In this document: one piece after another, positions 601 to 60,969 of the stretch | How positions within the stretch are numbered: position 1 is the stretch's first letter | How the letters are laid out: every line of letters begins with the position of its first letter | From: Lytechinus pictus | Lineage: Eukaryota | Length of the DNA stretch: 64,000 bases | Assembly: GCF_037042905.1 (NCBI RefSeq) | Contig: NC_087248.1 | Location: 10,850,001-10,914,000, forward strand | Direction of reading: 5' to 3' | Notes under the pieces: generated by a model | What the model saw: only the letters and a program-made list of their open reading frames with translations | Database searches by the model: none | Told to the model about the DNA's origin: nothing | Position numbers and translations under genes: made by a program

Positions 601-3600
601 TTATTTAGTGAATTGTTTTGAGATGATGGTAGATCCACTACTGCATCAAACAAGGCTCTCAACTCCACCTGGGGTGCATACGGTAAAAGAAGACACAGAA
701 CTTCTGATGATGCAGCAGCAGGAATTCTGTCTGTTGATGTAGTACCATCATCATCATCGTCCTGGTTACCAGGATCTTTTAAGATATCATTCACAAGAGG
801 TGTCCAGCAGAGTTTTTGGAGATGCTTCCTGCATCGGAGACCTTGACAAGGAAACAAATAGATCTTTCAAATCTCACACAAATTTTGAAACCAAACTCAC
901 TGCATACAGGTATAGCATTGGGACACAGCGTGTCACACCGATAGAGTCTCATTTTTGTGCTTTAAGTACATAGCCAATGGCAGATGAAATTCTTAAAAGG
1001 GTGGTTACTTCTTATTCTGGACTGCTTATTGAATTGCATTTAATTTAATTTACGGTAAGGTTTGGTTGTTTAATGGTAAGTAGTGAATTTTGTTGGAAAA
1101 ACAGAGAACAAATGATGAAGAACTAAAAATTTGATTTTGCAATCTTTTTTTTGTGAAAACCTATAATGATGACATCTGGAAAAAAATATAAAAAACTCAT
1201 AAGTGAATTAGGAGTCAAATATTCAAATTTTGTTTTTTTTTACAAATACATTTACATATTTTATTAATAAGTGTTTCAGTATAAGCTTGGACTTACTTCG
1301 CTTATTATCTCCAGCTGAGGACAGATAAGCTGCTATTGATGGGTACAAACTAGCTATGCTATCTTTTCTTGTTTTCTTCTGTGAGCTATCCATGATCCAG
1401 TCCTCAAATTGGCAAGGATTGGCCTTAATAAGGATTGGAGTGATCTCATCTCCCATCTGAAAAAAAGGAGAAGAGAGAGGGAGAGAGATGGAGGGAGGGG
1501 GGAATGATATGAATACATAAATTGAATATAGACAATCAATTTGTACAGATAAATTTAATTACAGAGTAAATTAAATTTTCTATAGAGTTTTTCAAAGCTG
1601 TAAGAACTTGTAAGGACTTCAGGACAAAGGGGCTGATAATGATACATGTACTTCAATCTAATTTCACTATTCAGTGTAAATTTCATTAATACAACATTCC
1701 ACATTACATCTTCAAATTATTTCTTTTCGATCTTCAAATCGTTTTTTTCATCTTCTTCTTCTAAGGAAACATGGACTAGAACTCTTTACCTGCTTACGCT
1801 GCTGTCTGGAAGCTTCCAAGCAAACAGAGAGGGCTCCCTTCATATCAGAATCTAACGGCAACAGGTGAGTGTGCTCCTTCAAGAGTTCACCAATGGCTTT
1901 CAACAAAGTCCATGACTTCCGTTCAACCGCTATGGCTAGGATATCCTTGACATCTATAGTGTTCAAACAGTCTGACCCTGAGGGATGTTGGTGTGGCACT
2001 TCTTTGACAGCTGCATAAGTGCCTCTGGAGGATGTGACCTTTCTGTGATCCAGGCTCCTGTAATTGGACTCTGAAGATGATATCCTTGATGCTATAAGGA
2101 GGTATTCCCCTGTTAAACATAGTAGTCCTCTGGATTCAAAGTCATAATTTTGGTCCTTGGCGATTTCTTGCTTCATGAAGGACACAACTTGCCTGAGGAC
2201 ACATAGACATCTTCCTGGATGGATGTAACCCTTGAGACTAACCAGGAGATCAATGACGACTCTGGAATGTGCCTCATTCTCAGATGGCACCAACAAAGTC
2301 CGAAGCATATTCTCTGCAGCTGCAACTAGTACCCTCAGTTCTCTCTCAAGTTCAACTTGGGGTACAAACTCCTTCAACACAGTCAACACCTCCCTGACCC
2401 TATCTGTACATGGGTCGTATCTAAGCCCACATATGATTGGATGCCTCAGGATTACAGTACTCAACTTGAGCCAATCGCAGTCCTCTTTACTATAGCTATC
2501 TTCATTATCTATTTGGATATCCATGGCATCGGTATTTTCCTGTGATGGTTCACACTGTTCTCTCAGCTCTTTGCAGACATCTTTTGATTTTTCTTTTGCT
2601 TGATGAAGTACAGCCATAAATATGTCAGTGTAGAACTGTGCAGCATCATTGGAGCTCTAAAAAACAAACAACAGGATAGAATAAGGTGACATCATAAATC
2701 TCATATTATTTTTTTTTTCCAATGCAAACATTTTTTCTTTTCATGAGTATACTAAAACAATAAGGCTTTCAGTTTCAGGATAGTGAAAATTATTTATTCA
2801 TAAATTAAATTTGAATGATGATGGTTAGTGAACACTTAACTTGGACAATTTAACCTGAGAGAACTGGGCCCTGTCGCATAAAGCTTAGCAATTGATCATA
2901 AGGCTAATTTTCAATTGTTCACACGTAATAATGAATGTAAATCAATTGCAGATATCAGGCCTACATGTATGATCAATCGCTAAACTTTATATTATTATTA
3001 TTATTATTACTTATTATTTGTACTGCGCTTTTCCCATTAGGCCCAAAGCGCTTACAATGAATTAATCAAATGTAATATTTTAAAAACTACAAAGTACGAA
3101 AGAGATGAGTTTTTAATGACTTTTTGAAAATTGCTAATGTTGGAGACTGTCTAATTATTAGTGGCAGGTCGTTCCAGGATTTTGAAGCCGACACCGTAAA
3201 AGTTCTGTCACCAGCTAATGTACGAGTTAATGAATATGTGAGGCGAAGGTGATCACTGGCCGACCTAAGTGCTCTAGTAGGTGTATACAGATTCAAGCAG
3301 TTACTTAAATACTGTGGAACCTGTTTATTCAGTGTTTTGTAGACAATCAAGAGTAATTTGAACGTAATTCTCTGTTTAAAAGGAAGCCAGTGAAGAGAAT
3401 TAAAGAGTGGTTGGGAAGGATGATCTCGGGAAACCTGTAAAATTAATCGTGCTGCCCAATTTTGTAGTCGTTGAATACGAATTAATTGATTAGAGGGAAT
3501 TGTAGAAAGGAGCCCATTGCAATAATCGATACGAGACAGAACCAATCATAGGTCCCTGACCAAGCTTTGGTTACAAAAAAAAAACCCACCTATATTGCTG

Positions 3601-27834: not shown

Positions 27835-28225
27835 CAGGGGCGGATCCAGGATTTTCCAAAAAGGGGGCAAATTTTTGGAGGAAAATTTTGACAAGCCCCC
27901 CCCCAAAAAAAAAAATTTTCAACCACAAATTAAGGATATTTCGTACCCGAGAAAAATTTGACAATCAAAAATTAAGGATATTTCGTACCCGAAAAAAAAT
28001 TGACAAGCAATAAGAAAAAAGGTTTTCAACCACAAATTAAGGATATTTCGTACCCAAAAAATTTGATAAGCAAAAAAAAAAAGTGCTTCAATTTCAAAAG
28101 AGGGGGGGGGGGCACACCTCGGATTCATTTTACATTGACATTTTTACATTACAAATTTTAATTTTTCTTCTCAAGGGGGGGGGGGGCACGTGCCTCCTAT
28201 GCCCCCCCCCCTGGATCCGCGCCTG
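27835..28225. mobile_element. hAT-like MITE nested in another MITE (27709-28242)
   Basis: TIRs cagggggcggatccagg / cctggatccgcgcctg with an exact 8-bp TSD catgaaac. Host TIRs ggggagcgtttcat / atgaaacgctcccc. Confidence 0.8.
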
Positions 28226-28358
28226 CATGAAACGCTCCCCTGAACAGAATTGAGGAATGAAACAACCCCGATCTATTTATTTTTTTCATTGGGGAAAAGG
28301 GAAGTTGTATAATGATTTCAATATCAAAACTATATGAAGCTTGACATCCAATCCCATC

Positions 28359-30473
28359 TTATTCGAGATAAATGCGTTGGATATTCCGGAGGGACCCCTC
28401 TGACGCAAACATCTTAACTTTCTCTTCTACACTGCCCTCATAGTACTCCTTGAACGCCAACGATTTGTTCCAGTAGTAGGAGCTCTGCCGATCACCAATG
28501 AAGGATTCTACCACTTGTTGGTTGTCGTAGTGAAGGAAATCATCTTCGCGATCGCATTCGGCATATTCTTGGTATTGGGTGGCACTTGATGTTTCACTAC
28601 TTGAGACCAGAGACGTGTTGTTGTCATCTGTACCCTGCGATGAATCTTCGTATACTCCAGAGTAGCCATCTGAACAACTGCCTTCAGGATCAACATCATC
28701 CTTCAGTTTCTTCAGCTCGCTAATATCTTGCTTCGGACGTGGTGGAAGAGGTTTGGCAGAGGACTTTCTGCGGACTGTGCAGTTGCGAGGCTGCTCATAG
28801 ACGGGCTCTTCAGAATTGCTGCATTTTGGGTTAGGGAAGATTCCTTGTTGAAGGTTTGTAAACTGAACTGTGTCCGGATGCCTGTTGAAGGGTAGCCGAC
28901 CTTGCCTCGTTGCCCTCTGTATGATCAGGACCAGTGATATGGAACACATCACAAGCACAAAGCCAACACTAACCGCAATCAGAAGCATCCAGAAGATATC
29001 CCAGAAGTCAAAGGAGGAATCTGCAGCTTTTGTAGGTTCACTTATTCGCAATCTGGAAGTTAAAGAGGCTGTAACTTTGGTGGTTAAGAGAGACAGTCTA
29101 GATACCTGAGATGATGTCTTCATAGGACTCCCAGTTGTAGCTCTGTCGACATTTGAAGTAAACGTACAGGACTTTCCTTTGACCGATGCTCCATTATTTA
29201 TTTCACACGTCACAACATGAGGGTCTCTTCCAGACAGAGAGTTATTTGGCAATTCATATAAGTCTCTCTGTAACCATGGCAATATTTCCTTCAGATTGCT
29301 GCTGTTGCTTTCCTGAACTGGATTTCCATCTAGGAACCATGTAAGGAAAAGACTCGTCTCATTTCTGTCAATGAATGCACAGGTAAAGTGATATACCCCT
29401 TTGGCGCGGGAGTGGAAGAGATATATCCCTGTGTCAATATCGGCTACACCATGCTGGTTTCTTGATGAACATTCGTTTCCAGAATTGATGAGAGGGCTAC
29501 CAAATATGATCTTCGACGTATTATGGGAAGTGCCGATTGTGTTCATTGCTGTACATGTAACATCGACACTAAAGTTTCTAAATCCAACGTGTGCTAGTGG
29601 TATGGAAATGTTCTGTTCAGTTGACCCGCAGGTAGAAAGGGCTCCCTCTGGTAAGCATAACCACCTGAATACATCTACTGGCGGATTAGCATCTACCAGA
29701 CACTGGAGAGATATTGATCTCGTCAAAGATGGTACCAGTATTTCAGAATATCTTGGGCTCACCTCAACTTTGGGTCGGTACAAGACCTCATATGGACCCA
29801 AAGAGCAGTTGGATTGGCGTCCTGGGAAGTTCGAGTTTGTCACGACGCAATGAATCATCTCCCCCTGAAGCCTTCGGTCAATGGTGACCATCCAAGACAA
29901 AGAACACACCTCCTGGGATAGAACTGTGTGATGAAGGGCTCTTCGGTTGGACTGCTCCCATGTCATGTCCAATGGGAGGTTGCATCCAGGTACCTCACAG
30001 CTAACAGTCACTGTGCTGCCAACTGCGACTGCGAGATCGTCTTGGGCATCGCAAATCAACTCTCCTTCTCCTGGAAAGTGCACAACATCCAACTCTCCGA
30101 AATCAGACGAAGCAATCATTATTCTATCTCCTCCCAAAAGTAAAAAGGTGCATCGGTATGCACCATCCAGGTCTCTAAGTGCCCCTTGGATGGTCAAGTT
30201 CGATGTGATCAAACCATTATTGAAATGCGTGTCAACATGGATGAATCCTTGAGGATAGAGAATCTCACTTTTTCTAGTTTCCCAAAATGATGTTGCAGTC
30301 TTTACGTCGGACCTGATTTGACATTGAAGGGTAATGTTTTTTCCTTCCTCTACGCTGTTGCTGCTTGGGTTAATATCAAATACAATAGAAGCATCACATT
30401 TATAACCGTATGGGGACAAAATGGTGTATATCAACAGGAGAGTTTGCAATGAGAATCCAAAAGACGATTGCAT
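28359..30473 (-). CDS. Type I membrane IgSF receptor A: signal peptide, 4 Ig-like domains, S/T stalk, TM, ~180-aa Tyr/Pro-rich tail; single coding exon
   Basis: 739-codon ORF from TTG at 30578. Likely start is MQSSFG at 30473; an alternative ATG lies at 30539. Ig motifs: EEGKNITLQC..W..SNLTI..DGAYRC; VTVSC..MTW..IHC; ISLQC..ANPP..FRW..VTCTAMNTIG; FTC..LTWFLDG..VTCEI. TM WMLLIAVSVGFVLVMCSISLVLII. Tail contains EPVYEQP, KPLPPRPK and GYSGVYED. Confidence 0.85.
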   Translation of the reverse strand: MQSSFGFSLQTLLLIYTILSPYGYKCDASIVFDINPSSNSVEEGKNITLQCQIRSDVKTATSFWETRKSEILYPQGFIHVDTHFNNGLITSNLTIQGALRDLDGAYRCTFLLLGGDRIMIASSDFGELDVVHFPGEGELICDAQDDLAVAVGSTVTVSCEVPGCNLPLDMTWEQSNRRALHHTVLSQEVCSLSWMVTIDRRLQGEMIHCVVTNSNFPGRQSNCSLGPYEVLYRPKVEVSPRYSEILVPSLTRSISLQCLVDANPPVDVFRWLCLPEGALSTCGSTEQNISIPLAHVGFRNFSVDVTCTAMNTIGTSHNTSKIIFGSPLINSGNECSSRNQHGVADIDTGIYLFHSRAKGVYHFTCAFIDRNETSLFLTWFLDGNPVQESNSSNLKEILPWLQRDLYELPNNSLSGRDPHVVTCEINNGASVKGKSCTFTSNVDRATTGSPMKTSSQVSRLSLLTTKVTASLTSRLRISEPTKAADSSFDFWDIFWMLLIAVSVGFVLVMCSISLVLIIQRATRQGRLPFNRHPDTVQFTNLQQGIFPNPKCSNSEEPVYEQPRNCTVRRKSSAKPLPPRPKQDISELKKLKDDVDPEGSCSDGYSGVYEDSSQGTDDNNTSLVSSSETSSATQYQEYAECDREDDFLHYDNQQVVESFIGDRQSSYYWNKSLAFKEYYEGSVEEKVKMFASEGSLRNIQRIYLE

Positions 30474-30894
30474 TCTTCTAATTTTGCAATTCAAGCTAAA
30501 ACAATTGAACACTGCTTTTCCTAGAGTTTTCGCCATCATCAAACAAAGTGTTAAGAGCCAAATAAACGGTTCCGTCAATATTCTGTAAAACTTAAGTTAA
30601 GTTCATTCTCTATACGAGGAAGATGTACCATGGCGATGATGAAAAAAAAAATCGTCAAATTTCCACTGACCAAACTCGCTAGGAATATTTCATTCTCTCC
30701 TCGAAACTCTTTCAAGTGGAAATAAGCTGAACCCAAAAGAGATTGATGGAGGTTTGAAACCGATCTTCCCCATAAAACTGTTTTGAAGTTCTGCATATTG
30801 ATTAGTTTTTATGGCGATGACCATTCTATTTTGATTTATTGGTACCATACCAGTTTCAAAACAAGATCAACGTCAGACGTTGATTAAAAGCTTA

Positions 30895-32690: not shown

Positions 32691-33419
32691 TTTTTATAAA
32701 TGTTTGTTAACATTGATTTTATCGAGAACATCATTAACAATCAACTAAAAAACACGTAATTCGTGTGAAAAGACCCTTTCACAACCTGACCATGCATCAT
32801 AGGGAAGTTACAAATTGATGCAGAGGTTCGAGGTTCGAACCCTGGTCACGTCTTTCGGATGGTGACGTTAAAGGTCGGTCCCAGACGTAAATAATCATAT
32901 ATGATTGATACACTTCTGACAAAAACTCAAATACATACATACATGACCATGGCAACATTTGTGACTAATTGGTGACATAATATTTTGCACAAGATACGAA
33001 TAGATAAATGACACTGCCACCTCCAAATTCCCTTTTGGGGCGCCCACATCGTCCCAAAAGCCGACCCCAATCCACTCATCACAACAAATCATATAGTTGT
33101 TATCAATCATTACAAACATACCCTTCGATCCTCGTTGAGAGAAAAACAAATCATATTCAATATTTACAATCTTAATCTTACAAATACCATAATTTTGCAT
33201 ATCTTAGTCAAACATCAAAGTTCGCCATGAAATCTGTAAGTGCTCTTTAGATTTTCACGTGATTGTTATGACGAAATGACACCGACATGGAATTGGAGGG
33301 AAATGGATTTTGACATTATACAAGATACTACTCAAGGGATCTATGTGTTCACAGTCATGAAAATCATATATCAATCACAGTGAGTTGGGATACTCATTTT
33401 AGAGGCTTCAAATTAGACG

Positions 33420-34938
33420 ATGGTATGTATTTCTTTTTCTTCTATATTTCTGCATCAAATAAAATATTGTAATTGATAGTCAAATCTGTGAAGACCATTT
33501 TATCAACCACTGTTACCCCTACTTGTTTTCTGTATCTGTAGCTGAAAAGTTAAATCATTCCATATTGGTATAATTGTATTCTTGCTCAATAAACCTAGTT
33601 CAGAGGTTATCGCTTGCACGTATATGTATATATGTTTGTTTCATTATAATTCAGCAAATTAAAATCGGAGAAAGACGGAGAAAAACGAAATATCAAATAA
33701 AACAGCATTCCTAAGACGTTGCCATATAACACCATCGGTTATTCATGATTCACTATAGGGTTTTATCTTAGCCATATCTGTATCTCAATTTTAGTTTTTG
33801 TTAAGTATCTATGCTGATCAGTGATTTTCTCAATTATGAACTACAATCCACTCCATTTCTCCTATTTCAGGAACGTCGTCATTATCAGCATGCACTGGTT
33901 TCAAGGAATTCCTTTTTGTGTCACAAAATCGTTACCATGGTTACTGTCTTTATCATCATATCAGTCAATCTGAGACAAACTGTTGTCGCTGATGAGGTAT
34001 TCCGTCTCGGGAATGATGCAATTATCGAATTTTCGTATTTATTTACTGATGATTATAAACACTGTTGGGAGATCTTTAGAGTGGGCATCAGTGATCCGTT
34101 CAATATCAATGGAACTATGAAACCAGATGCTCTGAATCCCTCACAAAGAGAGCGATTTACTGTTAGCGCTATGTGGGGGACAGATTATTTGGGTGCTCAT
34201 CTGCATATTCGCAACATCACGAAATTAGACAGAGGTGTATATATATGGGCTGTGAAGAGCCATGGGAGTGGAGTAGAACCCTCGGTCTCAACATTTGATG
34301 TATTTGTAGATGTTATAGTACCACCGGGAAGAGCACGATGTGTAATACGTCTATCAGTTTATTCATCTAACTGGCGTGAAGTTCATTGCGTCGCAACAGT
34401 AGAAAGTGATAGATATGATGGAGGGGTACAGCTCGTCTGTTACCAGGATAGCGAGAAGGCAACATTTCAGAGTGCACCTCTTGAAACATCAACCCATGTG
34501 AAGGGTGTATTTTGGATGAATGCAAAGCAAGCTATTAGGTGCTGTTCGCATGAAGGTAACTTCGTGAAGGTTCCAGGAGATTGCAATGACTTTATAAAAG
34601 ACGCCCTCATTCATGTCATTGAACCTGATGTTAGACGATCGACGACAAGAGTACCGCTCTCAACAACTTTCAACTTCGTAATTGATCGTGAAAAAACTTG
34701 GTCTGTGTCACCCAATGAGAATGAAATTACCAGTTACTCTGCTACATCTAAAGTAGAAACTGATTCCTCCAATCAATGCGTTTGTCCAAAAAATATTCCA
34801 AAATATTCTTTCTACATACCCTTGATCATGTTGATAGTGACATTTATTTTATTAATAATTTCCTTCGTTTTTAATATGAAATTCGTGTTAAAAAATAAAA
34901 ATAAAACGGGACTCGAGCACAACAAAATTAACAAGTGA
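33420..34938 (+). CDS. Short IgSF membrane protein C: signal peptide, disulfide-less V-like domain, Cys-rich second domain, stalk, TM, short basic tail
   Basis: Predicted exon 1 ends with ATG at 33420-33422, followed by GTATGT. Acceptor tttcag|GAA at 33871 is in frame with ORF 33811-34938. Motifs FRLGNDAIIEF..W..RERFTVS..LHIRNITKLDRGVYIW. TM YSFYIPLIMLIVTFILLIISFVF. Confidence 0.8.
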
Positions 34939-36310
34939 ACCAACCGACGTGATGCTGAAGGTATATTCCACCATACGACTACGTATAGTTTTTCCAGAAC
35001 CCTATATTAACTATTATTTCGTAATGGAATGAGCTATCAGGAACAGAACAGTGTTCAATCTCCCCGAAACCTTTAACGGCCATTTTCTTCTATTCTGCAG
35101 CTTTCAAATAACCTACTGTACGCTGCGCATGCTGATATTATATGGCATTCCGGGTATGGCATCCGTCATCCGTTCTTCTGCTGCCATGGCTGCCCTAAGA
35201 ATGTTTTCATCAACATTTGAGCTTCATTCTATTTCAGTGACTATAGTACTACATTCTACCTTCATGGCCTGAGAAACAAAAAAAGCTTGATATAGCTGCG
35301 CTATCTTGGAGTTTACAAAATGGCTACCGCAAATACGGTTTCCTTATTCAACCGCCTCTCATTAGCATGGTGATCGTGGTGATAAGATTTTTTCAGCCAA
35401 AGTTCCCCTTCGTTACCTCTTTCATCAAAACAGTGAAGTGTCTTTAGAAGAGACGACTTGAAAATGAACCTTTAAAAAGTAATAACCTTTTCATCAAAGA
35501 GAACACTAACCAACAACGCAAGTCTTGTTCTCACGAATCACACTCCTAAATAATGTCTTATTTATTTGAGGGCCTACATTTATGGTGAAATCTATAATCC
35601 TTTTCACGTATCCCGGTATAGCAATTTATTTAAAAACAAGTTGCGGTGTATTTTATTTATTTTTATGAATAAAAAAATCAAAGAAATAATAAAATTAAGT
35701 AATTGAAGAGATGTAAAGCACGACGAATTCGTTTTGATCACTTTCTTCTTTGAAAATCGGCATCATAATATTTGTGCCCACCAATTTTTGCAAACTTTAT
35801 GTAAATGGACAGTGCATGCACACTCGTAACTTTTGGTTTTCAATAAAACTGACAACTCATAGAAAAGATCGAATCCTTATAACAAATGTCCGAATATAAA
35901 TATCCCCATTTTGTAAATATCTAAATCGCCAGGACTTTCACAAAGTATAATCTGTTTATGGGACAGATTTTTTCATTCTTTCTGAGTGCAAATCTGATAA
36001 TAAAACTGATTTTCTGAAACGTGTGTGTGTGTGTGTTTATGATCACGAAATTGCCTCTTTTTGCGAAGTAATTGTGAGCGTAATGTGGGTTGTGACCAAA
36101 TTATCTACATTCATATGGATGAGTGCTTAAGTGTTAAGAAAACAGTGAGCGTGAAGTTGATTTGAACGTGCGAGAGTATGATAGTGGGTGGGTGCATTAT
36201 GTATGTCAGATATAGGTATACATTTCCATAATTCAAGAGGGCGCTGTTGGACATACGCGCTCGCTTCAAGCGGCGCCAGCTTGCTGTCCATTGAAACTAT
36301 ACGTCGCTTA

Positions 36311-36475
36311 TACCTTGGTCACATTTGTTCTACGGCGGCCGTACGGCGAGTCGAAAACAGCCGTTTTATTGGTTTTAATTCAAACCACCTATATGTAGTT
36401 GGAAAAAAAATGTTAAAAAACGGCTGTTTTCGACTCGCCGTACGGCCGCCGTAGAGCAAATGTGTGACCAAGGTA
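36311..36475. mobile_element. Palindromic MITE (copies at 38879-39043 and 43400-43557)
   Basis: taccttggtcacatttg..tacggcggccgtacggcgagtcgaaaacagccg is mirrored at the right end. Confidence 0.8.
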
Positions 36476-36655
36476 TTACGCAGATGCTCATTAGAGGTAT
36501 TTTCTGATTACATACAATCATGCATCAAAAGTTGTGGCTCTTTAATTTCAGCAATACAATCGTTTGCATGGTTTGGGTAGAAATGAAAAACATCACATCT
36601 TTCGCTTTTTATTTCAATGTTTACAGAAACAACGATCGGTTTCCCTCTCCGCACC

Positions 36656-39240
36656 CCCGGGGGGGGGGGGGGGGGGGGCACGTGCCTCCTATGCCCCCCC
36701 CCCCTGGATCCGCGCCTGCATGAAACGCTCCCCTGAACAGAATTGAGGAATGAAACAACCCCGATCTATTTATTTTTTTCATTGGGGAAAAGGGAAGTTG
36801 TATAATGATTTCAATATCAAAACTATATGAAGCTTGACATCTAATCCCATCTTATTCGAGATAAATGCGTTGGATATTCCGGACGGGAGGGACCCCTCTG
36901 ACGCAAACATCTTAACTTTCTCTTCTACACTGCCCTCATAGAACTCCTTGAATGCCAACGATTTGTTCCAGTTGTAGGAGCTCTGCCGATCACCAATGAA
37001 GGATTCTACCACTTGTTGGTTGTCATAGTGAAGGAAATCATCTTCGCGATCGCATTCGGCATATTCTTGGTATTGGGTGGCACTTGATGTTTCACTACTT
37101 GAGACCAGAGACGTGTTGTTGTCATCTGTACCCTGCGATGAATCTTCGTATACTCCAGAGTAGCCATCTGAACAACTGCCTTCAGGATCAACATCATCCT
37201 TCAGTTTCTTCAGCTCGCTAATATCTTGCTTCGGACGTGGTGGAAGAGGTTTGGCAGAGGACTTTCTGCGGACTGTGCAGTTGCGAGGCTGCTCATAGAC
37301 GGGCTCTTCAGAATTGCTGCATTTTGGGTTAGGGAAGATTCCTTGTTGAAGGTTTGTAAACTGAACTGTGTCCGGATGCCTGTTAAAGGGTAGCCGACCT
37401 TGCCTCGTTGCCCTCTGTATGATCAGGACCAGTGATATGGAACACATCACAAGCACAAAGCCAACACTAACCGCAATCAGAAGCATTGTTAAAAAATAAA
37501 AATAAAACGGGACTCGAGCACAACAAAATTAACAAGTGAACCGACGGGATGCTGAAGGTCTATTCCACTATACGACTACGTATAGTTTTTCCAGAACCCT
37601 TTGTTAACTATTATTTCGTAATGGAATGAGCAATCAGTAACAGCACAGTGTTCAATCTCCCCGTCACATTTAACGGCCGTTTTCTTCAATTCTACAGCTT
37701 TCAATTAGCCTACGTTGCACATGCTGATATTATATGGCATTCCGGGTATGGCATCCGTCATCCGTTCTTCTGCTGCCTTATATAAGAATGATTTTATCAA
37801 CATTTGAGCTTCATTCTATTTCAGTGACTATAGTACTACATTCTACCTTCATGGCCTGAGAAACAGAAAAAGCTTGATATAGCTGCGCTATCTTGGAGTT
37901 TACAAAATGGCTACCGCAAATACGGTTTCCTTATTCAACCGCCTCTCATTAGCATGGTGATCGTGGTGATAAGATTTTTTCAGCCAAAGTTCCCCTTCGT
38001 TACCTCTTTCATCAAAACAGTGGAATGTCTTTAGAAGAGACGACTTGAAAATGAACCTTTAACAAGTAATAACCTTTTCATCAAAGAGAACACTAACCAA
38101 CAACGCAAGTCTTGCTCTCACGAATCACACTCCTAAATAATGTCTTATTTATTTTAGGGCCTATACATTTATGGTGAAATCTATAATCCTTTCCACGTAT
38201 CCCGGTATAGCAATTTATTTAGAAACAAGTTGCGGTGTATTTTATTTATTTTTATGAATAAAAAAATCAAAGAAATTATAAAATTAAGAAATTGAAGAGA
38301 TGTAAAGCACGACGAATTCGTTTTTATCACTTTCTTCTTTGAAAATCGGCATCATAATATTTGTGCCCACCAATTTTTTCAAACTTTATGTAAATGGACA
38401 GTGCATGGTTTTCAATAAAACTGACAACTCATAGAAAAGATCGAATCCTTATAACAAATGTCCGAATATAAATATCCCCATTTTGTAAATATCTAAATCG
38501 CCAGGACTTTCACAAAGTATAATCTGTTTATGGGACAGATTTTTTCATTCTTTCTGAGTGCAAATCTGATAATAAAACTGATTTTCTGAAACGTGTGTGT
38601 GTGTTTATGATCACGAAATTGCCTCTTTTTGCGAAGTAATTGTGAGCGTAATGTGGGTTGTGACCAAATTATCTACATTCATATGGATGAGTGCTTAAGT
38701 GTTAAGAAAACAGTGAGCGTGAAGTTGATTTGAACGTGCGAGAGTATGATAGTGGGTGGGTGCATTATGTATGTCAGATATAGGTATACATTTCCATAAT
38801 TCAAGAGGGCGCTGTTGGACATACGCGCTCGCTTCAAGCGGCGCCAGCTTGCTGTCCATTGAAACTATACGTCGCTTATACCTTGGTCACATTTGTTCTA
38901 CGGCGGCCGTACGGCGAGTCGAAAACAGCCGTTTTATTGATTTTAATTCAAACCACCTATATGTAGTTGGAAAAAAAATGTTAAAAAACGGCTGTTTTCG
39001 ACTCGCCGTACGGCCGCCGTAGAGCAAATGTGTGACCAAGGTATTACGCAGATGCTCATTAGAGGTATTTTCTGATTACATACAATCATGCATCAAAAGT
39101 TGTGGCTCTTTAATTTCAGCAATACAATCGTTTGCATGGTTTGGGTAGAAATGAAAAACATCACATCTTTCGCTTTTTATTTCAATGTTTACAGAAACAA
39201 CGATCGGTTTCCCTCTCCGCACCCCCCGGGGGGGGGGGGG
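36656..39240. repeat. Young tandem duplicate of ~28176-36660 carrying a 5.9-kb internal deletion
   Basis: 36660-37486 matches 28176-28988, and 37487-39240 matches 34886-36660. Junction agaagcat|tgttaaaa. Confidence 0.9.
36779..37486 (-). pseudogene. Truncated copy of receptor A (TM plus cytoplasmic tail only), open 235-codon ORF
   Basis: Near-identical to the last ~209 codons of receptor A. The ectodomain is deleted, and a 4-bp insertion near 36882 alters the C-terminus. Confidence 0.75.
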
Positions 39241-39766
39241 CACTCGACCAAAAAAGTAGTGGGTATGTGCCGCAGGCGAGACAAAAAACGGGGGCCTTGG
39301 AGCGGGCTTATTGTAAAAAGGAGGGTCCTCGAAACGGGCATCGGAACGACAAATGTTTGTGAAAACGGGGGTCCTTGGAACGGGTCGCTTGCGTGTGCAT
39401 CCCTATGGAACGGGCGTACGTGTATATGCAGCTATCCCAGCGGCACGGGCGCCGGGTGCGCTCGCGCAGAGGCGATGGTCGGACAGCGCTCACCGGCCGC
39501 TTTTCACCAAAATTGCAGCTCATTGTGGCGGATCAATGCGACCGGAACGGCGTAACGAATAATATGCGAAGCTTGGGAGCGGATTTCTCTCTTCTTTTCT
39601 CTCGATAAGAAGAAAATGCTATGCTTCGGAGCGGCTTTCTTAGTTCTTTTTCTTAATAAGATGAAAATGCTATGCCCTGGAACGGAAATTTGGGTGTAAA
39701 AATGGGGGTCCCCTCCGCGGCACATACCCACTATGCATTATATACTGAGTGCCCCCCCCCCCCGGG
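39225..39766. mobile_element. hAT-like non-autonomous element with CCCGGG-polyG TIRs
   Basis: cccggg(g)n-cactc..agtgggtatgtgccgc / gcggcacatacccact..gagtg(c)n-cccggg. TSD tccgcacc on both sides. Confidence 0.8.
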
Positions 39767-40867: not shown

Positions 40868-41947
40868 ATGGCCTGGCTCCAGGATGCAGTTTTCTTCAAT
40901 AGATGCACTGTCATTTCTATAATTATTACATTAGTCTATCTGAGACAAACTTTCGGGCAGTCCACGAATTATAAATATCGTCTCGGATCAGATGCCAACA
41001 TCCCATTTTCGTATGTATTTACTGACGATTCTCAGCACTCCTGGGAAATCTTCAGAGTAGGCATCCATGACCCATTTAATATCAATGGAACCATGAACCC
41101 GGATGCTTTGAATCCAACCCAAATGGGTCGAATTATCGTAAGCGCCACATGGAGAGCAGGTTCTTTAAGTGTTAATCTGCATATTTTCAACATCTCAGAA
41201 TTAGACAGAGGTGTATATGTTTGGGTTGTTTCAAGTCATAGAAGAAAGGTCAAACGGGAGGTGAGAACATTCGATGTGTTTCTTGACGTAATTCGTCCAC
41301 CTAGTAGAGCAGTTTGTTTTGTTTCCATATCTCCGTATGATGCTGGTTTACGAGAGGTCCACTGTCAAGCAAACGTGGGAAGCGACGGGGCTGCTCAACT
41401 CATTTGCTACCAGGATGGTGAAAAAGCTACCTTTCAGAGTGCACCTGTTGTTTCATCTACCAAAGTAACTGGTGTCTTTTGGATGAATGTAAAGAAGAAT
41501 ATCCGATGCTGTTCTCATGAGGTTAACTATGTAACGGATCCCGGGGAATGCAAGGACTTTACGCGATCCGCCACAATTGAGTCAACATCAACTACAAAAC
41601 CAGTAACACCCATCTCAACAACTCTCAACATACTAATGAGTAAAGGGAAGACAGTGTTAACTGAACTCACAAATGACAGCAAACTTGTCACTGATTCTTC
41701 CACTTACACTCCAACGACATACGGCGATCATTATATCTACAAAGAATATACCATCAATCATATTACAGTTGTCTTTATCAGTCTATTTGTAATATCATCG
41801 TGTGCGTTGATAGCAACCCTATGTCTTATACGTGTCAAATACAGACCTCGTAAAATGAAGATATTAAAGGAATCTTCACAAGTGGAGATGCAACCGATGA
41901 ACCCAGATGGAAGAAGACAAGAAGGCCTGACGGAGACACAACCTTAG
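40868..41947 (+). CDS. Short IgSF membrane protein D, paralog of C
   Basis: ORF 40835-41947 with first ATG at 40868. Aligns with C over both domains (RLGSDANIPFSYVFTDD..WEIFRVGI.DPFNINGTM.PDALNP; LDRGVYVW; CYQD.EKATFQSAP; GVFWMN..IRCCSHE). TM ITVVFISLFVISSCALIATLCLI. Confidence 0.82.
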   Translation: MAWLQDAVFFNRCTVISIIITLVYLRQTFGQSTNYKYRLGSDANIPFSYVFTDDSQHSWEIFRVGIHDPFNINGTMNPDALNPTQMGRIIVSATWRAGSLSVNLHIFNISELDRGVYVWVVSSHRRKVKREVRTFDVFLDVIRPPSRAVCFVSISPYDAGLREVHCQANVGSDGAAQLICYQDGEKATFQSAPVVSSTKVTGVFWMNVKKNIRCCSHEVNYVTDPGECKDFTRSATIESTSTTKPVTPISTTLNILMSKGKTVLTELTNDSKLVTDSSTYTPTTYGDHYIYKEYTINHITVVFISLFVISSCALIATLCLIRVKYRPRKMKILKESSQVEMQPMNPDGRRQEGLTETQP

Positions 41948-46675: not shown

Positions 46676-48961
46676 CTATTGTGCAGTCTGAAGATCATCC
46701 AGGTTGAGTGTCTTTGACTTGTAGTAAGCACTTTGTTTTTCGGAGGCTCCAAGATGGACCACATTCTTGTTCTCGTACACGTTTGATCCCGAGATCGACG
46801 AGATATCACTATACTCTCCTTCATACGAGTTGCGGATGTACGACGCTTCGTCCTCTGCGGTGGAAGAGTCCAAGCTTCCTGGACAACTGTAGCATGAGTT
46901 CCGGAACTCCATCGGCGGAGCAAATTTAATGGGAGACTCATCAAAATTATAAGAAGCGATGTGTGCTCGTCGGAGGTAATTCCTTGAAGCATTCCTAGTA
47001 TTGGTCATCTTGTCTTCATCAGGAGTGGCGTACAAAGGTTCGTCTTCCACGTGGCCATTGGTTCTAGGTTCTGGTGCAGGAGAGGATCGAGGTGGAGATG
47101 CAAAAGACCTGGCCAATGTCGTATGATACACACCGTCTAGCATATTCAGGGTGTTCCTTGATCGGCTCCAAACCTTCTGGAAAGCGAAGACAACACCAAT
47201 AACACAGGCAAGGAGAGTAAATCCTACGACGACGGCTACCACCAGCATCCAAGCCATATTCAGAGACCCTCTTGTAGAACTCGTCACCTCGTCAGAGTCT
47301 TTCAATATGGCAATTGCATGTGTCTTTGAAACTACAGTGGATGACTTTTCCTTGTCATGCCCTGCCGCTATTGAAGAATTCGTTAATATAAAGTTAGTTG
47401 TAGTTGGCGTCCTTTTCTCGGGGATGTTCTCAACATCTGTGACAGAAGAGGTCTGCAACATTTTATGTGCTGTTATTGGTGTTGTTGTGGTTGTTGTTGT
47501 GATTGTTGGTGTGTCAGTGTTTACTCGAGTGAAATAGTCGAACATGCAGGAAGCTATGTAATTTTCCTCCAGACTTCTTAGTTCGCATGCTACTACATGC
47601 ATATCTCTTTCGGTATTTTCAATTGATCTGCGAGGGAGCACCAATTGCCAATCGAGAGGGTCCTTAGCATTGTGATCATGATACTGGACACGAGAACCGT
47701 TGACGAACCATATAATCCGACTTACCCTGGGGACAATGTGGTAATTTCTGTTCTGAAATGAACAATGGAAGACATCACTCGTAGATCTCCATTGCCTTTC
47801 GACGACCAGACGATTATTTATGATTGTATCATTATTTACGGACTGTCCTTTCTCCTTATCATTCTCCAAGACTTCTTCTAACTCCTTAACAATGACCTCT
47901 CCGTTTGCAGTCAAAGAAGAGTTGGGACTCTTTTCGTTTTCTTGGCAAGTCTTCAGAGAAGACAAGTCAACGTAACTCACATCAATGGTAACAGTGTTTT
48001 CATCGCTACCCACAATATTCATTGCAGAACATGTCACTGTGACGTTTGCATCAGTACCTTCCAGATATGGCATTGTCAAGGATGCATCCAGATATGGACT
48101 GGAAGACTCACATGATTCGAAAGCGTCAGGGGGATCACAGGACCAGGACATTGCACTGACCTCGGGAAAGGAATTGGCTCTGCATCTCAGTCTTGTCTCT
48201 GAAATTATAGGAGGTGTCAACGAATCTCGGTCAGTCGTAACTTTTACACGAGGGGCATGGATGACTTTAAAAGGTGCTAGAGAGCAATTGACGTGTTCCC
48301 CTTCGAAGGCAGAACTGGTAGCAATGCAGCAGATTTCCCTATCATGGAGCTGTGGCTTTGCTCTCAGGGTATTCCTAATAAGTGTTTCGTCGGCATTTCT
48401 AGTTGAGTCCTGTGCCCCTAATAGGGTTGTAACTGAAGATTTCAGATGGCTGCACAACATCCATTTAAGAGTGATAGGTGGATTCGTATTCGGACCTTGA
48501 CACTCGATAGTAATTCTCTCATTTTCTCGGTAGAACGATTCAGGGTCCGGGAACCTTTTACACTCCATATCCGTTTCCTCCAAGAAGTACTGGACATTTA
48601 CTCCAACCAGAGGAGACGTTAGGGAGACATCTTCGCCATCTGCGAAACGGATGGATACCGTGCACTTGAAGTATTTCCGAGAATGGCGGTTTGTGTCCAG
48701 TAGTTGGAGGTTAGAGGTTACCACTGTCGAATTCAGTTCTTCGCTGATCAAGATAGACGCATCTAAATTCTGGTATGTTTTGTAGTTATCCGACCAAGTG
48801 ACTGACGCTGATTCGAATGGTGACCGAGCTTTTACAGAACAAACAAATATTGCAGGTCGACCCTCCTTCACAGTAACTCGGTAAGGCTGGATCAGAAATT
48901 CAGCCCGGTGTAAACCTTGTGCAGCAGGGGACATCAGGATGATCAAGAGCAGTAGCGACAT
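46676..48961 (-). CDS. Type I membrane IgSF receptor B (761 aa), divergent paralog of A; single coding exon
   Basis: Signal MSLLLLIILMSPAAQG. Four Ig-like domains colinear with A (KEGRPAIFVC..VTW..TSNLQL..FKC; ITIEC..LKW..ICC; LRCRANSFP..SWSC..VTCSAMNIVG; FHC..IWFVNG..VVACEL). Thr-rich stalk. TM WMLVVAVVVGFTLLACVIGVVFAF. Tail contains EPLYATP, YEGEYSDI and NVYENK. Confidence 0.87.
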   Translation of the reverse strand: MSLLLLIILMSPAAQGLHRAEFLIQPYRVTVKEGRPAIFVCSVKARSPFESASVTWSDNYKTYQNLDASILISEELNSTVVTSNLQLLDTNRHSRKYFKCTVSIRFADGEDVSLTSPLVGVNVQYFLEETDMECKRFPDPESFYRENERITIECQGPNTNPPITLKWMLCSHLKSSVTTLLGAQDSTRNADETLIRNTLRAKPQLHDREICCIATSSAFEGEHVNCSLAPFKVIHAPRVKVTTDRDSLTPPIISETRLRCRANSFPEVSAMSWSCDPPDAFESCESSSPYLDASLTMPYLEGTDANVTVTCSAMNIVGSDENTVTIDVSYVDLSSLKTCQENEKSPNSSLTANGEVIVKELEEVLENDKEKGQSVNNDTIINNRLVVERQWRSTSDVFHCSFQNRNYHIVPRVSRIIWFVNGSRVQYHDHNAKDPLDWQLVLPRRSIENTERDMHVVACELRSLEENYIASCMFDYFTRVNTDTPTITTTTTTTPITAHKMLQTSSVTDVENIPEKRTPTTTNFILTNSSIAAGHDKEKSSTVVSKTHAIAILKDSDEVTSSTRGSLNMAWMLVVAVVVGFTLLACVIGVVFAFQKVWSRSRNTLNMLDGVYHTTLARSFASPPRSSPAPEPRTNGHVEDEPLYATPDEDKMTNTRNASRNYLRRAHIASYNFDESPIKFAPPMEFRNSCYSCPGSLDSSTAEDEASYIRNSYEGEYSDISSISGSNVYENKNVVHLGASEKQSAYYKSKTLNLDDLQTAQ

Positions 48962-59856: not shown

Positions 59857-60969
59857 TCATGCGAGTGTAATGTTCGACGACAAGGACGGTCTAGTCTTTG
59901 AGGAGGACATATAACATTCCCTAGATTTCGACTCTGTAGAGCACGTACACCTCTTTACTAAACACTTGATAATGTCTTTAAAAGCATTCCTAAACCGCAA
60001 GTTCCTCCTGGCATAGACAAGCGGGTTGATGGCCCCGTTCAAGAGCCAGAATGTCTCCGAGCTTCGCTTGACAACAATCCACGTTGTCCAATTGATAAGG
60101 ACGGATACCCCTATTCCTTCGAAGAAGTACCTTGTGGCCGTCGGCAACCAACATATGACAAAGAGTACAATGATGATGCCGATTGTCTTTGTGGCTTTGA
60201 ACTGTCTGGCGTCGTTGCTGCTCTGGCTGTCGGATCTTAGAGATTTTTTATTTCCCAGGGCAAAAGATTTTTCTCGTTCCGCCTCCATATCTTGCCAGTG
60301 GCCCCTCGCGATCCGGTAGATGTGTAGGTAAATTAAAGTGATGACGAGGAACCCCAGCGTCAATAGGATGAAGGAAACGAACGAAAAGGTGGGCGATGAA
60401 CCTGCTTCCTTGCAGTCGGGCCGCATGGTATCTGTGCCAGTTGGTTTCAAGACGGCACTCGCACCGATCAGGAGACTCATCAACCATATGAACACCTCAA
60501 GGAGAACGATGCGTTTCATTGTAACGATATCATGGTATCGCAACGGCTTCAACACACCGATATACCGTTCGAAAGTGATTGCTATGATGTGAAAGAAGGA
60601 AGCCGCTGCACAGGTGTATGTCAACACAAAGAAATACTTCCGAGTCCCGATCGAACATGTGTACCGATTCTCCACGATCACGGCGTATATCGACGGCGGG
60701 TAGCCGAAAAGGGGAAAGATTAAGTCCGTGACGGCAAGGGTGGCGATCAGGGCGTAGGTCGGTTGTCGAAGGTTGCGCTCGCGGAAAACGGCGAGCACGA
60801 CCAGGGAGTTGCCGAAGACTGTGAGTATCCATAGCGGAGTATGAATAATGAAGATGAGACTGATGTATAAGGGTGTGACCATCCCGGTGACGTAGTCCGA
60901 GGAATTGTATGGAACATCATCTTCCAGCGTGTCCAGTTCCAGAGAGTATTCAGTCGTCATAGAAGCCAT
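59857..60969 (-). CDS. Class A (rhodopsin-like) GPCR, biogenic amine/adenosine receptor-like; uninterrupted coding region
   Basis: 370 aa with seven hydrophobic segments. Motifs GNSLV (TM1), LAVTD (TM2), ERY (TM3), W (TM4), KATKT..F.ICWLP (TM6), NPLVY (TM7) and FRNAF (helix 8). Confidence 0.92.
   Translation of the reverse strand: MASMTTEYSLELDTLEDDVPYNSSDYVTGMVTPLYISLIFIIHTPLWILTVFGNSLVVLAVFRERNLRQPTYALIATLAVTDLIFPLFGYPPSIYAVIVENRYTCSIGTRKYFFVLTYTCAAASFFHIIAITFERYIGVLKPLRYHDIVTMKRIVLLEVFIWLMSLLIGASAVLKPTGTDTMRPDCKEAGSSPTFSFVSFILLTLGFLVITLIYLHIYRIARGHWQDMEAEREKSFALGNKKSLRSDSQSSNDARQFKATKTIGIIIVLFVICWLPTATRYFFEGIGVSVLINWTTWIVVKRSSETFWLLNGAINPLVYARRNLRFRNAFKDIIKCLVKRCTCSTESKSRECYMSSSKTRPSLSSNITLA

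Follow-up and report, generated by a model that had tools for sequence, protein, structure and literature searches.

Lytechinus pictus genes C and D belong to a large, apparently echinoid-specific family of putative membrane proteins whose V-type immunoglobulin domain mostly lacks the canonical disulfide

Disulfide-less immunoglobulin (Ig) V domains are textbook curiosities, described mainly from a few vertebrate families. These include CD2, CD58 and SLAM, and the N domains of the CEACAM proteins. The C-type domain of CD2 has an additional disulfide. In nectin/CADM, CAR/JAM and DIP/Dpr proteins, V-first Ig ectodomains mediate cell–cell recognition through the V domain. Sea urchins are already known for their expanded innate immune families. 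The window analyzed here is a stretch of 64,000 nucleotides from the sea urchin Lytechinus pictus (contig NC_087248.1, positions 10,850,001 to 10,914,000). A preliminary description of part of it (33990-34590), made from the letters alone, proposed a V-like Ig domain lacking both canonical cysteines, followed by an unusual Cys-rich second domain. It read this architecture as either convergent with or deeply homologous to that of CD2/CD58/SLAM and CEACAM, with an aromatic Phe/Trp pair in place of the disulfide.

The stretch 33990-34590 falls within a 375-codon open frame on the forward strand (33811-34938) and codes for the complete ectodomain, with both of its domains, of a type I membrane protein, denoted gene C (Table 1). 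We considered the possibility that gene C is a single exon starting from the in-frame ATG at 33811. This model was rejected because contigs from public runs contain the splice 33422|33871, which is present in three runs from two studies (the runs are not on record as RNA). The junction matches the annotated 356-aa product P0001, which starts MERRHYQ. Upstream of 33870, one X3 contig and two X2 contigs carry the letters of 33410-33421; run X1 has a joint from 33423 to 33878. The depth of X3 was ~60 across exon 2 and the 3′ flank, and 4-8 in the intron and upstream, with 7-8 in the intron itself. Gene C is thus transcribed and spliced, as read from run contigs mapped to 33000-36000, which give no expression level. 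The mature protein is identical whichever ATG (33420 or 33811) starts it. A QCVC motif at 34777-34785, close to the membrane and shared with P0003, could form intermolecular disulfides.

Table 1. Positions of genes A to D and of the parts of gene C within the window.
Feature	Position	Strand	Remarks
Gene A, intronless gene for a multi-Ig type I membrane protein, Tyr-rich tail	28359-30578	-	Pfam matches; interleaved family
Gene C, 5′ exon (5′ UTR and annotated ATG 33420-33422)	33319-33422	+	Run X3 contig 33319-33423
Gene C, intron, GT...AG	33423-33870	+	GTATGT donor from 33423, AG acceptor 33869-33870
Gene C, coding exon 2 including stop	33871-34938	+	With the exon 1 ATG, gives the 356-aa product P0001
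Gene C, signal peptide hydrophobic core and predicted cleavage region (MVTVFIIISVNLRQTVVA)	33937-33990	+	Sequence; cleavage inferred
Gene C, domain 1, V-type Ig without disulfide	33991-34311	+	Phe 34030-34032 at B-strand Cys site, Trp 34246-34248 at F-strand Cys site
Gene C, domain 2, diverged IgC, six invariant Cys	34312-34611	+	Codon starts 34339, 34387, 34438, 34540, 34543, 34582
Gene C, Ser/Thr-rich stalk, membrane-proximal QCVC motif	34612-34809	+	Sequence; P0003 has the same CVC motif
Gene C, transmembrane helix (about)	34810-34872	+	Kyte-Doolittle mean 3.0
Gene C, cytoplasmic tail, 21 aa, Lys-rich, no Tyr	34873-34935	+	Sequence
Gene D, paralog of C, same architecture	40868-41947	+	359 aa, 40-aa tail; Phe at 41006-41008, Trp at 41222-41224
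Gene B, second multi-Ig member, long Tyr-rich tail	46676-48961	-	Pfam Ig_3, I-set, C2-set_2; domain 2 CC doublet at expected F strand

Gene D lies ~7 kb downstream of gene C. Over 281 residues, the C and D proteins share 54% identity (E = 1e-98), and their common motifs are therefore not due to chance; their DNA is only 73-75% identical. The sequence DAIIEF in gene C (34015-34032) corresponds to DANIPF in gene D (40991-41008), and DRGVYIW (34228-34248) to DRGVYVW (41204-41224). The Phe (TTT) and Trp (TGG) that end these motifs in both genes are each one base change away from Cys (TGT). The other V-set marks listed in the preliminary description could also be read in both proteins: the C-strand Trp (CWEIF in C, SWEIF in D), RF or RI on strand D, and L-x-I-x-N on strand E. 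Domain 1 of gene C contains a single Cys, at a position where D and the L. variegatus ortholog have Ser, and domain 1 of gene D contains none, making an intradomain disulfide impossible in either. Domain 2 of gene D holds all six Cys of gene C.

The closest public protein to gene C is an uncharacterized L. variegatus product with 83-89% identity, considered to be its ortholog. Comparison of gene C with ortholog-like contigs gave 12 synonymous and 19 non-synonymous differences, corresponding to a dN/dS of roughly 0.5 from this partial list; the differences in runs X1 and X2 recapitulate substitutions of the L. variegatus ortholog. Relatives were collected in an alignment of 86 sequences (A1), on which all residue counts below are based and in which paralogs are only 20-35% identical. 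Taken together, the low paralog identity and the dN/dS ratio indicate fast yet constrained evolution.

The 210-residue ectodomain of gene C was modeled with AlphaFold2 using the A1 alignment, yielding two all-β domains with a mean pLDDT of 95.1 and a pTM of 0.83. Domain 1 (pLDDT 95-98) has seven main strands, with 25 residues that include two short bridges between strands C and D. This is the V-set arrangement, a two-sheet Ig sandwich with strands A–G and a C′/C″ excursion. When the ectodomain model was compared with the PDB in Foldseek, only two-domain Ig chains were returned, with PD-L1 first (E = 1.4e-8, TM = 0.49), followed by Fab light chains and TCR chains. The Ig β-sandwich that the preliminary description expected for the ectodomain is thus what the model and its closest matches display. 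In the ESM Atlas search, the best match was the family's own cluster (TM = 0.74), which has no Pfam family and whose 93 members are all from Echinodermata; butyrophilin, CADM3, CRTAM and CD80-like clusters came next. A language-model search led to V-set clusters. Overall, the folds closest to the ectodomain are of the B7/PD-L1/butyrophilin/nectin-like/DIP kind.

A profile of the family, hereafter the V–C family, matched solved PDB chains of pIgR, CEA/CEACAM, VEGFR, CAR, PD-L1 and JAM-A at E-values of 1e-11 to 1e-5. In the profile alignment, the Phe column sits on the B-strand Cys of pIgR D1 and the column following Y-x on its F-strand Cys. The Phe and Trp read directly in C and D thus occupy the two canonical positions, and the proposal of a V-like domain without both cysteines was upheld; both Cys are present in only 1 of the 86 relatives. 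The D-x-G-x-Y motif is well kept (Asp in 85/86, Tyr in 81/86), and the C-strand Trp is found in C and D but in only 5/86 relatives. Neither C nor D matched a Pfam Ig family at E ≤ 1. Among the 86 relatives, 29 matched the Pfam V-set family at E ≤ 0.01 (best 1.9e-7), and fewer matched Ig_3, ig or I-set. Judged from these matches, the V–C family is not outside known families. The preliminary description had named a match to a described Pfam/InterPro family as counting against it; C and D themselves and domain 2 have no such match, and a third of the family is recognized as V-set.

The V–C profile matched 123 places in the L. pictus genome. Of these, 112 reached E ≤ 2.5e-19, giving a family of at least 112 coding regions; about 69 lie on the contig that contains the window (C4). 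Uninterrupted frames of 280-410 codons make up the majority, and stop codons occur inside ~20 of the stronger matches. A HMMER scan of 1.84 billion representative proteins gave 133 clusters at E ≤ 1e-3, and all 15 of the named relatives are echinoid (L. pictus, L. variegatus, Strongylocentrotus purpuratus, Diadema antillarum and D. setosum; for example, XP_063954958.1 from L. pictus). Word-indexed homolog searches with a single sequence and with the profile, which returned 3 and 10 proteins, respectively, did not widen this taxonomic range. From the sequences collected here, the V–C family is apparently restricted to echinoids. Named relatives are annotated as "uncharacterized", except for a few long models in which the module is fused C-terminally to ankyrin-repeat proteins (P0084, P0104, P0114, P0144 and P0145, from S. 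purpuratus, L. pictus and Diadema). Annotation fusion is the probable explanation, odd as their recurrence across three genera is; one such S. purpuratus model was later shortened to 434 aa. Our literature searches found no publication describing the family, and database names were equally uninformative. The V–C family belongs to the Ig superfamily; notable are its size, a second domain that sequence models do not recognize, and the interleaving with a second family.

The topology of the family is not uniform. A clear transmembrane segment is absent from 34 of the 86 relatives, which could be truncated models or secreted or GPI-anchored forms. Several paralogs (L004, L009, L011, L014 and L015) end in a hydrophobic C-terminus with no cytoplasmic tail, which suggests that they may be GPI-anchored and that both transmembrane and GPI-linked proteins may occur in the family. 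Where present, the cytoplasmic tails are short (median about 36 residues) and mutually unrelated, with ITIM-like motifs in 5/52.

The state of the two canonical Cys sites varies across the family. At the B-strand site, 77 sequences have Phe, 6 have Tyr and 1 has Cys. The F-strand site holds Leu in 31, Cys in 24, Phe in 9, Val in 8, Trp in 5, Ile in 3, Ser in 3, Tyr in 2 and Ala in 1. Domain 1 contains no Cys in 22 sequences and the F-strand Cys alone in 13; about a dozen share an alternative Cys pair between the B–C loop and the start of strand E, a subclade feature, and the canonical pair is found only in P0060. In a maximum-likelihood tree, the family falls into two halves with strong support (99/98), one of 32 rows in which the F-strand Cys is mostly kept and one of 54 rows with a hydrophobic residue at this site. 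Trp at the F site is confined to a five-row subclade (100/100) comprised of C, D, the L. variegatus ortholog and two unnamed sequences. Since one major clade retains the F-strand Cys and one member retains both, the disulfide was lost inside the V–C family, independently of CD2/SLAM or CEACAM, rather than its absence being inherited. Of the two readings offered in the preliminary description, the data therefore favor convergence over deep homology. Its Phe/Trp replacement needs a similar adjustment: Phe at the B site is general, and the pair itself is, as far as the alignment goes, a local variant of a Phe-plus-hydrophobic solution. The family thereby provides a graded series of Cys states (both, F only, alternative pair, none) for how Ig cores tolerate disulfide loss.

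The V–C genes are interleaved with a second Ig family, represented in the window by genes A and B, which match Pfam Ig_3, I-set and Ig_2, with a CD80-like C2-set in B. The gene A ectodomain has at least 30 matches in the L. pictus genome, 28 of them on C4, and 20 of these 28 multi-Ig paralogs are located within 10 kb of a V–C gene, compared to a random expectation of 0.7. A further multi-Ig and V–C pair lies side by side on contig C21. A homolog search with gene A gave one close unnamed homolog and a weak CD22-like match, and the name KirrelL could not be attached to it; kirrelL is described as an intronless echinoderm Ig gene (PMC8903837). An alignment of D1–D2 from 16 multi-Ig members (A2) shows no exception at either V-domain Cys and a nearly invariant C-strand Trp. 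An hhalign comparison of the V–C family with multi-Ig D1–D2 gave a probability of 95.6% (E = 1.2e-8 over 179 columns), a score whose value as proof is limited by the generic likeness of Ig profiles. It places the Phe and Trp of gene C on the invariant multi-Ig Cys and, in domain 2, aligns one Cys of the CC doublet as well as the A-, B- and G-strand Cys. The shared non-canonical A- and G-strand Cys and the Pro-rich linker that precedes the A-strand Cys point to common descent of the V–C module and the first two multi-Ig domains.

Domain 2 is less readily recognized. Ten members from across the V–C family had no match to any Pfam Ig family at E ≤ 10, and a domain-2 profile found no Ig chain in the PDB at the same cutoff. 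By its predicted fold, domain 2 is an Ig constant-type (C1/C2-set; B7/BTN-like) seven-strand sandwich with a putative B–F disulfide, in line with the preliminary description, which had seen in it a C-type domain with extra Cys. The six Cys noted there are present in C and D and invariant in 85-86 relatives, the exception being one aberrant sequence. All elements of the family signature, PPGKAxC...HCxA...CYQ...FW...CCS...CxDF plus Phe at the B site of domain 1, occur in both proteins. Domain 2 would thus be a case of IgC drift beyond every sequence model while the fold stays. Pfam-based searches would miss most of the V–C family, which bears on invertebrate Ig gene counts.

The pairing of the six Cys was considered by comparison with the multi-Ig family, in which domain 2 has four invariant Cys on strands A, B, F and G (A2). 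The non-canonical pair in these proteins can only bond mutually, giving an A–G bond. The V–C family has exactly two more invariant Cys: one lies on strand C, on or adjacent to the site of the canonical Trp, and the other is the second Cys of the strand-F CC doublet. These two strands run antiparallel and side by side, and residues 150 and 185 of the mature fragment would face each other directly in two of the three plausible registers. From this homology and strand register, the likely disulfides are 117-198 (A–G), 133-184 (B–F) and 150-185 (strand C to the second CC Cys), in mature-fragment numbering. The choice of the canonical Cys within the doublet differs between two comparisons with the multi-Ig family. 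In clade I, many members carry an additional Cys in the G strand of domain 2 (CxCxDF), leading to an odd Cys count and possible intermolecular disulfides.

The region between C and D contains a mosaic of duplicated sequence. Positions 36695-37486 repeat the 3′ end of gene A (28202-28687 and beyond) at 99% identity, leaving an open frame for a transmembrane segment plus tail at 36779-37486, and 37539-38892 is a 91-100% (mostly 98-100%) copy of the 3′ flank of gene C (34942-36324). The mosaic (36695-38892) is recent, and could be either a real segmental duplication or an assembly artefact. We considered whether gene D arose by duplication of an A–C unit; this was rejected, since the A-like fragment is a 99% copy, compared to the much lower C/D identity at the DNA level. 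Elsewhere in the window, an ORF start (MHQKLWLFNFSNTIV...) followed by Pro/Gly-rich low-complexity sequence occurs twice, at 36520-36723 and 39088-39555, and belongs either to the duplicated mosaic or to a repeat element. An intronless rhodopsin-family GPCR gene of 370 aa is found at 59857-60969 on the reverse strand (Pfam 7tm_1, E = 1e-37). Also on the reverse strand, a 152-aa ORF at 3087-3545 resembles the C-terminal part of a LINE-type reverse-transcriptase ORF, and we take it to be, probably, a retrotransposon remnant.

In our view, C and D are probably functional genes from a large sea-urchin-specific family within the Ig superfamily, encoding type I membrane glycoproteins with a disulfide-less V domain, a diverged IgC domain and a role in recognition or adhesion. 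Behind its signal peptide, each protein would have an N-terminal Ig domain of the V type and an IgC domain nearer the membrane, then a Ser/Thr stalk, a single transmembrane helix and a short tail in which no motif is obvious. The B–F disulfide of the V domain would be replaced by packed hydrophobic residues, with Phe at the B site family-wide and, at the F site, Trp in the C/D subclade and otherwise Leu, Val, Phe, Ile or a leftover Cys. Three disulfides are predicted for the IgC domain: the canonical B–F bond, an A–G staple in common with the multi-Ig proteins, and a family-specific bond from strand C to the second CC Cys. On the basis of the architecture, the structural neighbors and the cell-surface topology, a V–C protein would most likely act as a recognition or adhesion ligand or receptor at the cell surface through its V domain. 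Because the tails are short, unrelated and rarely ITIM-like, and some paralogs are tail-less, any signaling would presumably depend on partners rather than on the protein's own tail.

It is very improbable that C and D are instead strict homologs of vertebrate CD2/CD58/SLAM or CEACAM that inherited a disulfide-less V domain from a common ancestor. The layout is indeed the same, a V domain without the disulfide followed by a C-type domain with extra Cys, and the hydrophobic, tail-less C-termini of some paralogs are reminiscent of GPI-linked CD58, CD48 and CEACAMs. CEA, CEACAM1 and CEACAM6 appeared in the profile search, and CEA was the top PDB sequence match (E = 2.6e-11), but this score is the sum of seven weak stretches that match a generic E–F motif, each at E ≥ 8. 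The specific link to CD2/CD58/SLAM drawn in the preliminary description found no counterpart, in that no such chain appeared among the best 50-60 rows of any sequence or fold search. The F-strand Cys clade and the member with both Cys, moreover, put the loss inside the V–C family, and the closest relatives detected are echinoid multi-Ig genes with canonical Cys. Least probable of the alternatives is that C and D are decaying or non-functional duplicates whose missing Cys reflect degeneration. The family is large, tandemly duplicated and fast-evolving, ~20 of its stronger genomic matches are interrupted by stop codons, and recent rearrangements adjoin gene C; such surroundings would suit decay. 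However, the frames of both C and D are intact, and gene C is spliced, has a conserved ortholog and gave a highly confident AlphaFold2 model. The six Cys of domain 2 are invariant, and D-x-G-x-Y nearly so, in 85-86 sequences from several genera, and Phe is kept at the B site in 77/86.

The interleaving of the two families raises another explanation, in which the short-tailed V–C proteins are ligands or cis-partners of the Tyr-tailed multi-Ig receptors and the two co-duplicate and co-diversify. We regard such a paired system as unlikely, although it has more to recommend it than the alternatives above. The tails are complementary, short and motif-less in one family and long and Tyr-rich in the other, and the proximity on C4 (20/28 within 10 kb, against 0.7 at random) and the pair on C21 are consistent with it. 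Adjacency may, however, reflect only common descent and tandem duplication, given that the families are homologous over D1–D2, and the relative orientation of neighbors is not conserved. A complex prediction for D1–D2 of gene A with D1–D2 of gene C gave an ipSAE of 0.02, below the mark, which argues neither for nor against binding. In its widest form, the >110 V–C and roughly 30 multi-Ig genes would constitute a co-duplicating ligand–receptor system private to sea urchins and serving immunity, allorecognition or cell identity, in which release from the V-domain disulfide freed the binding domain to diversify; this we hold to be slightly more doubtful still. More than 110 clustered V–C genes interleaved with putative signaling receptors nevertheless make a candidate recognition repertoire.

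Compared with described systems, the functional V–C membrane proteins that we favor most resemble B7, PD-L1 and butyrophilin in the shape of the ectodomain, with an identity of only 10-14%, so that the likeness may be generic to V–C modules. The B7/BTN proteins keep the canonical disulfide in V and have one disulfide in IgC, whereas the V–C family has neither a B30.2 domain nor a B7-type tail. Nectin/CADM, CAR/JAM and DIP/Dpr likewise place the V domain first; Necl-4 gave the lowest rmsd to the gene C ectodomain model (3.6 over 179), and CAR and JAM-A align with the V–C profile across the D1–D2 boundary. These proteins, however, contain canonical disulfides, carry PDZ or 4.1 motifs in conserved tails and are phyletically widespread, in contrast to the variable short tails and, so far, echinoid-only distribution of the V–C family. 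CD2/CD58/SLAM and the CEACAM N domains have in common with it a V domain in which hydrophobic residues replace the B–F disulfide, with a C-type domain after it; in the CEA N domain, Leu occupies the F-strand site, as in 31/86 V–C members. The C2 domain of CD2/CD58/SLAM has two disulfides (four Cys), compared to six Cys in V–C domain 2. Like the V–C genes, the multi-Ig genes A and B belong to chromosome clusters, have intron-free coding regions, and encode the A- and G-strand Cys of domain 2, the former following a Pro-rich linker (PPGKAxC in V–C, YFPxxxELxC in multi-Ig). They differ in retaining both V-domain Cys and the domain 2 C-strand Trp, in possessing several more Ig domains as well as long tails rich in Tyr, and in lacking the C-strand Cys and the second CC Cys of V–C domain 2 (gene B has the CC doublet). 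On this sequence comparison, the nearest real relatives of the V–C family are the echinoid multi-Ig genes that adjoin it.
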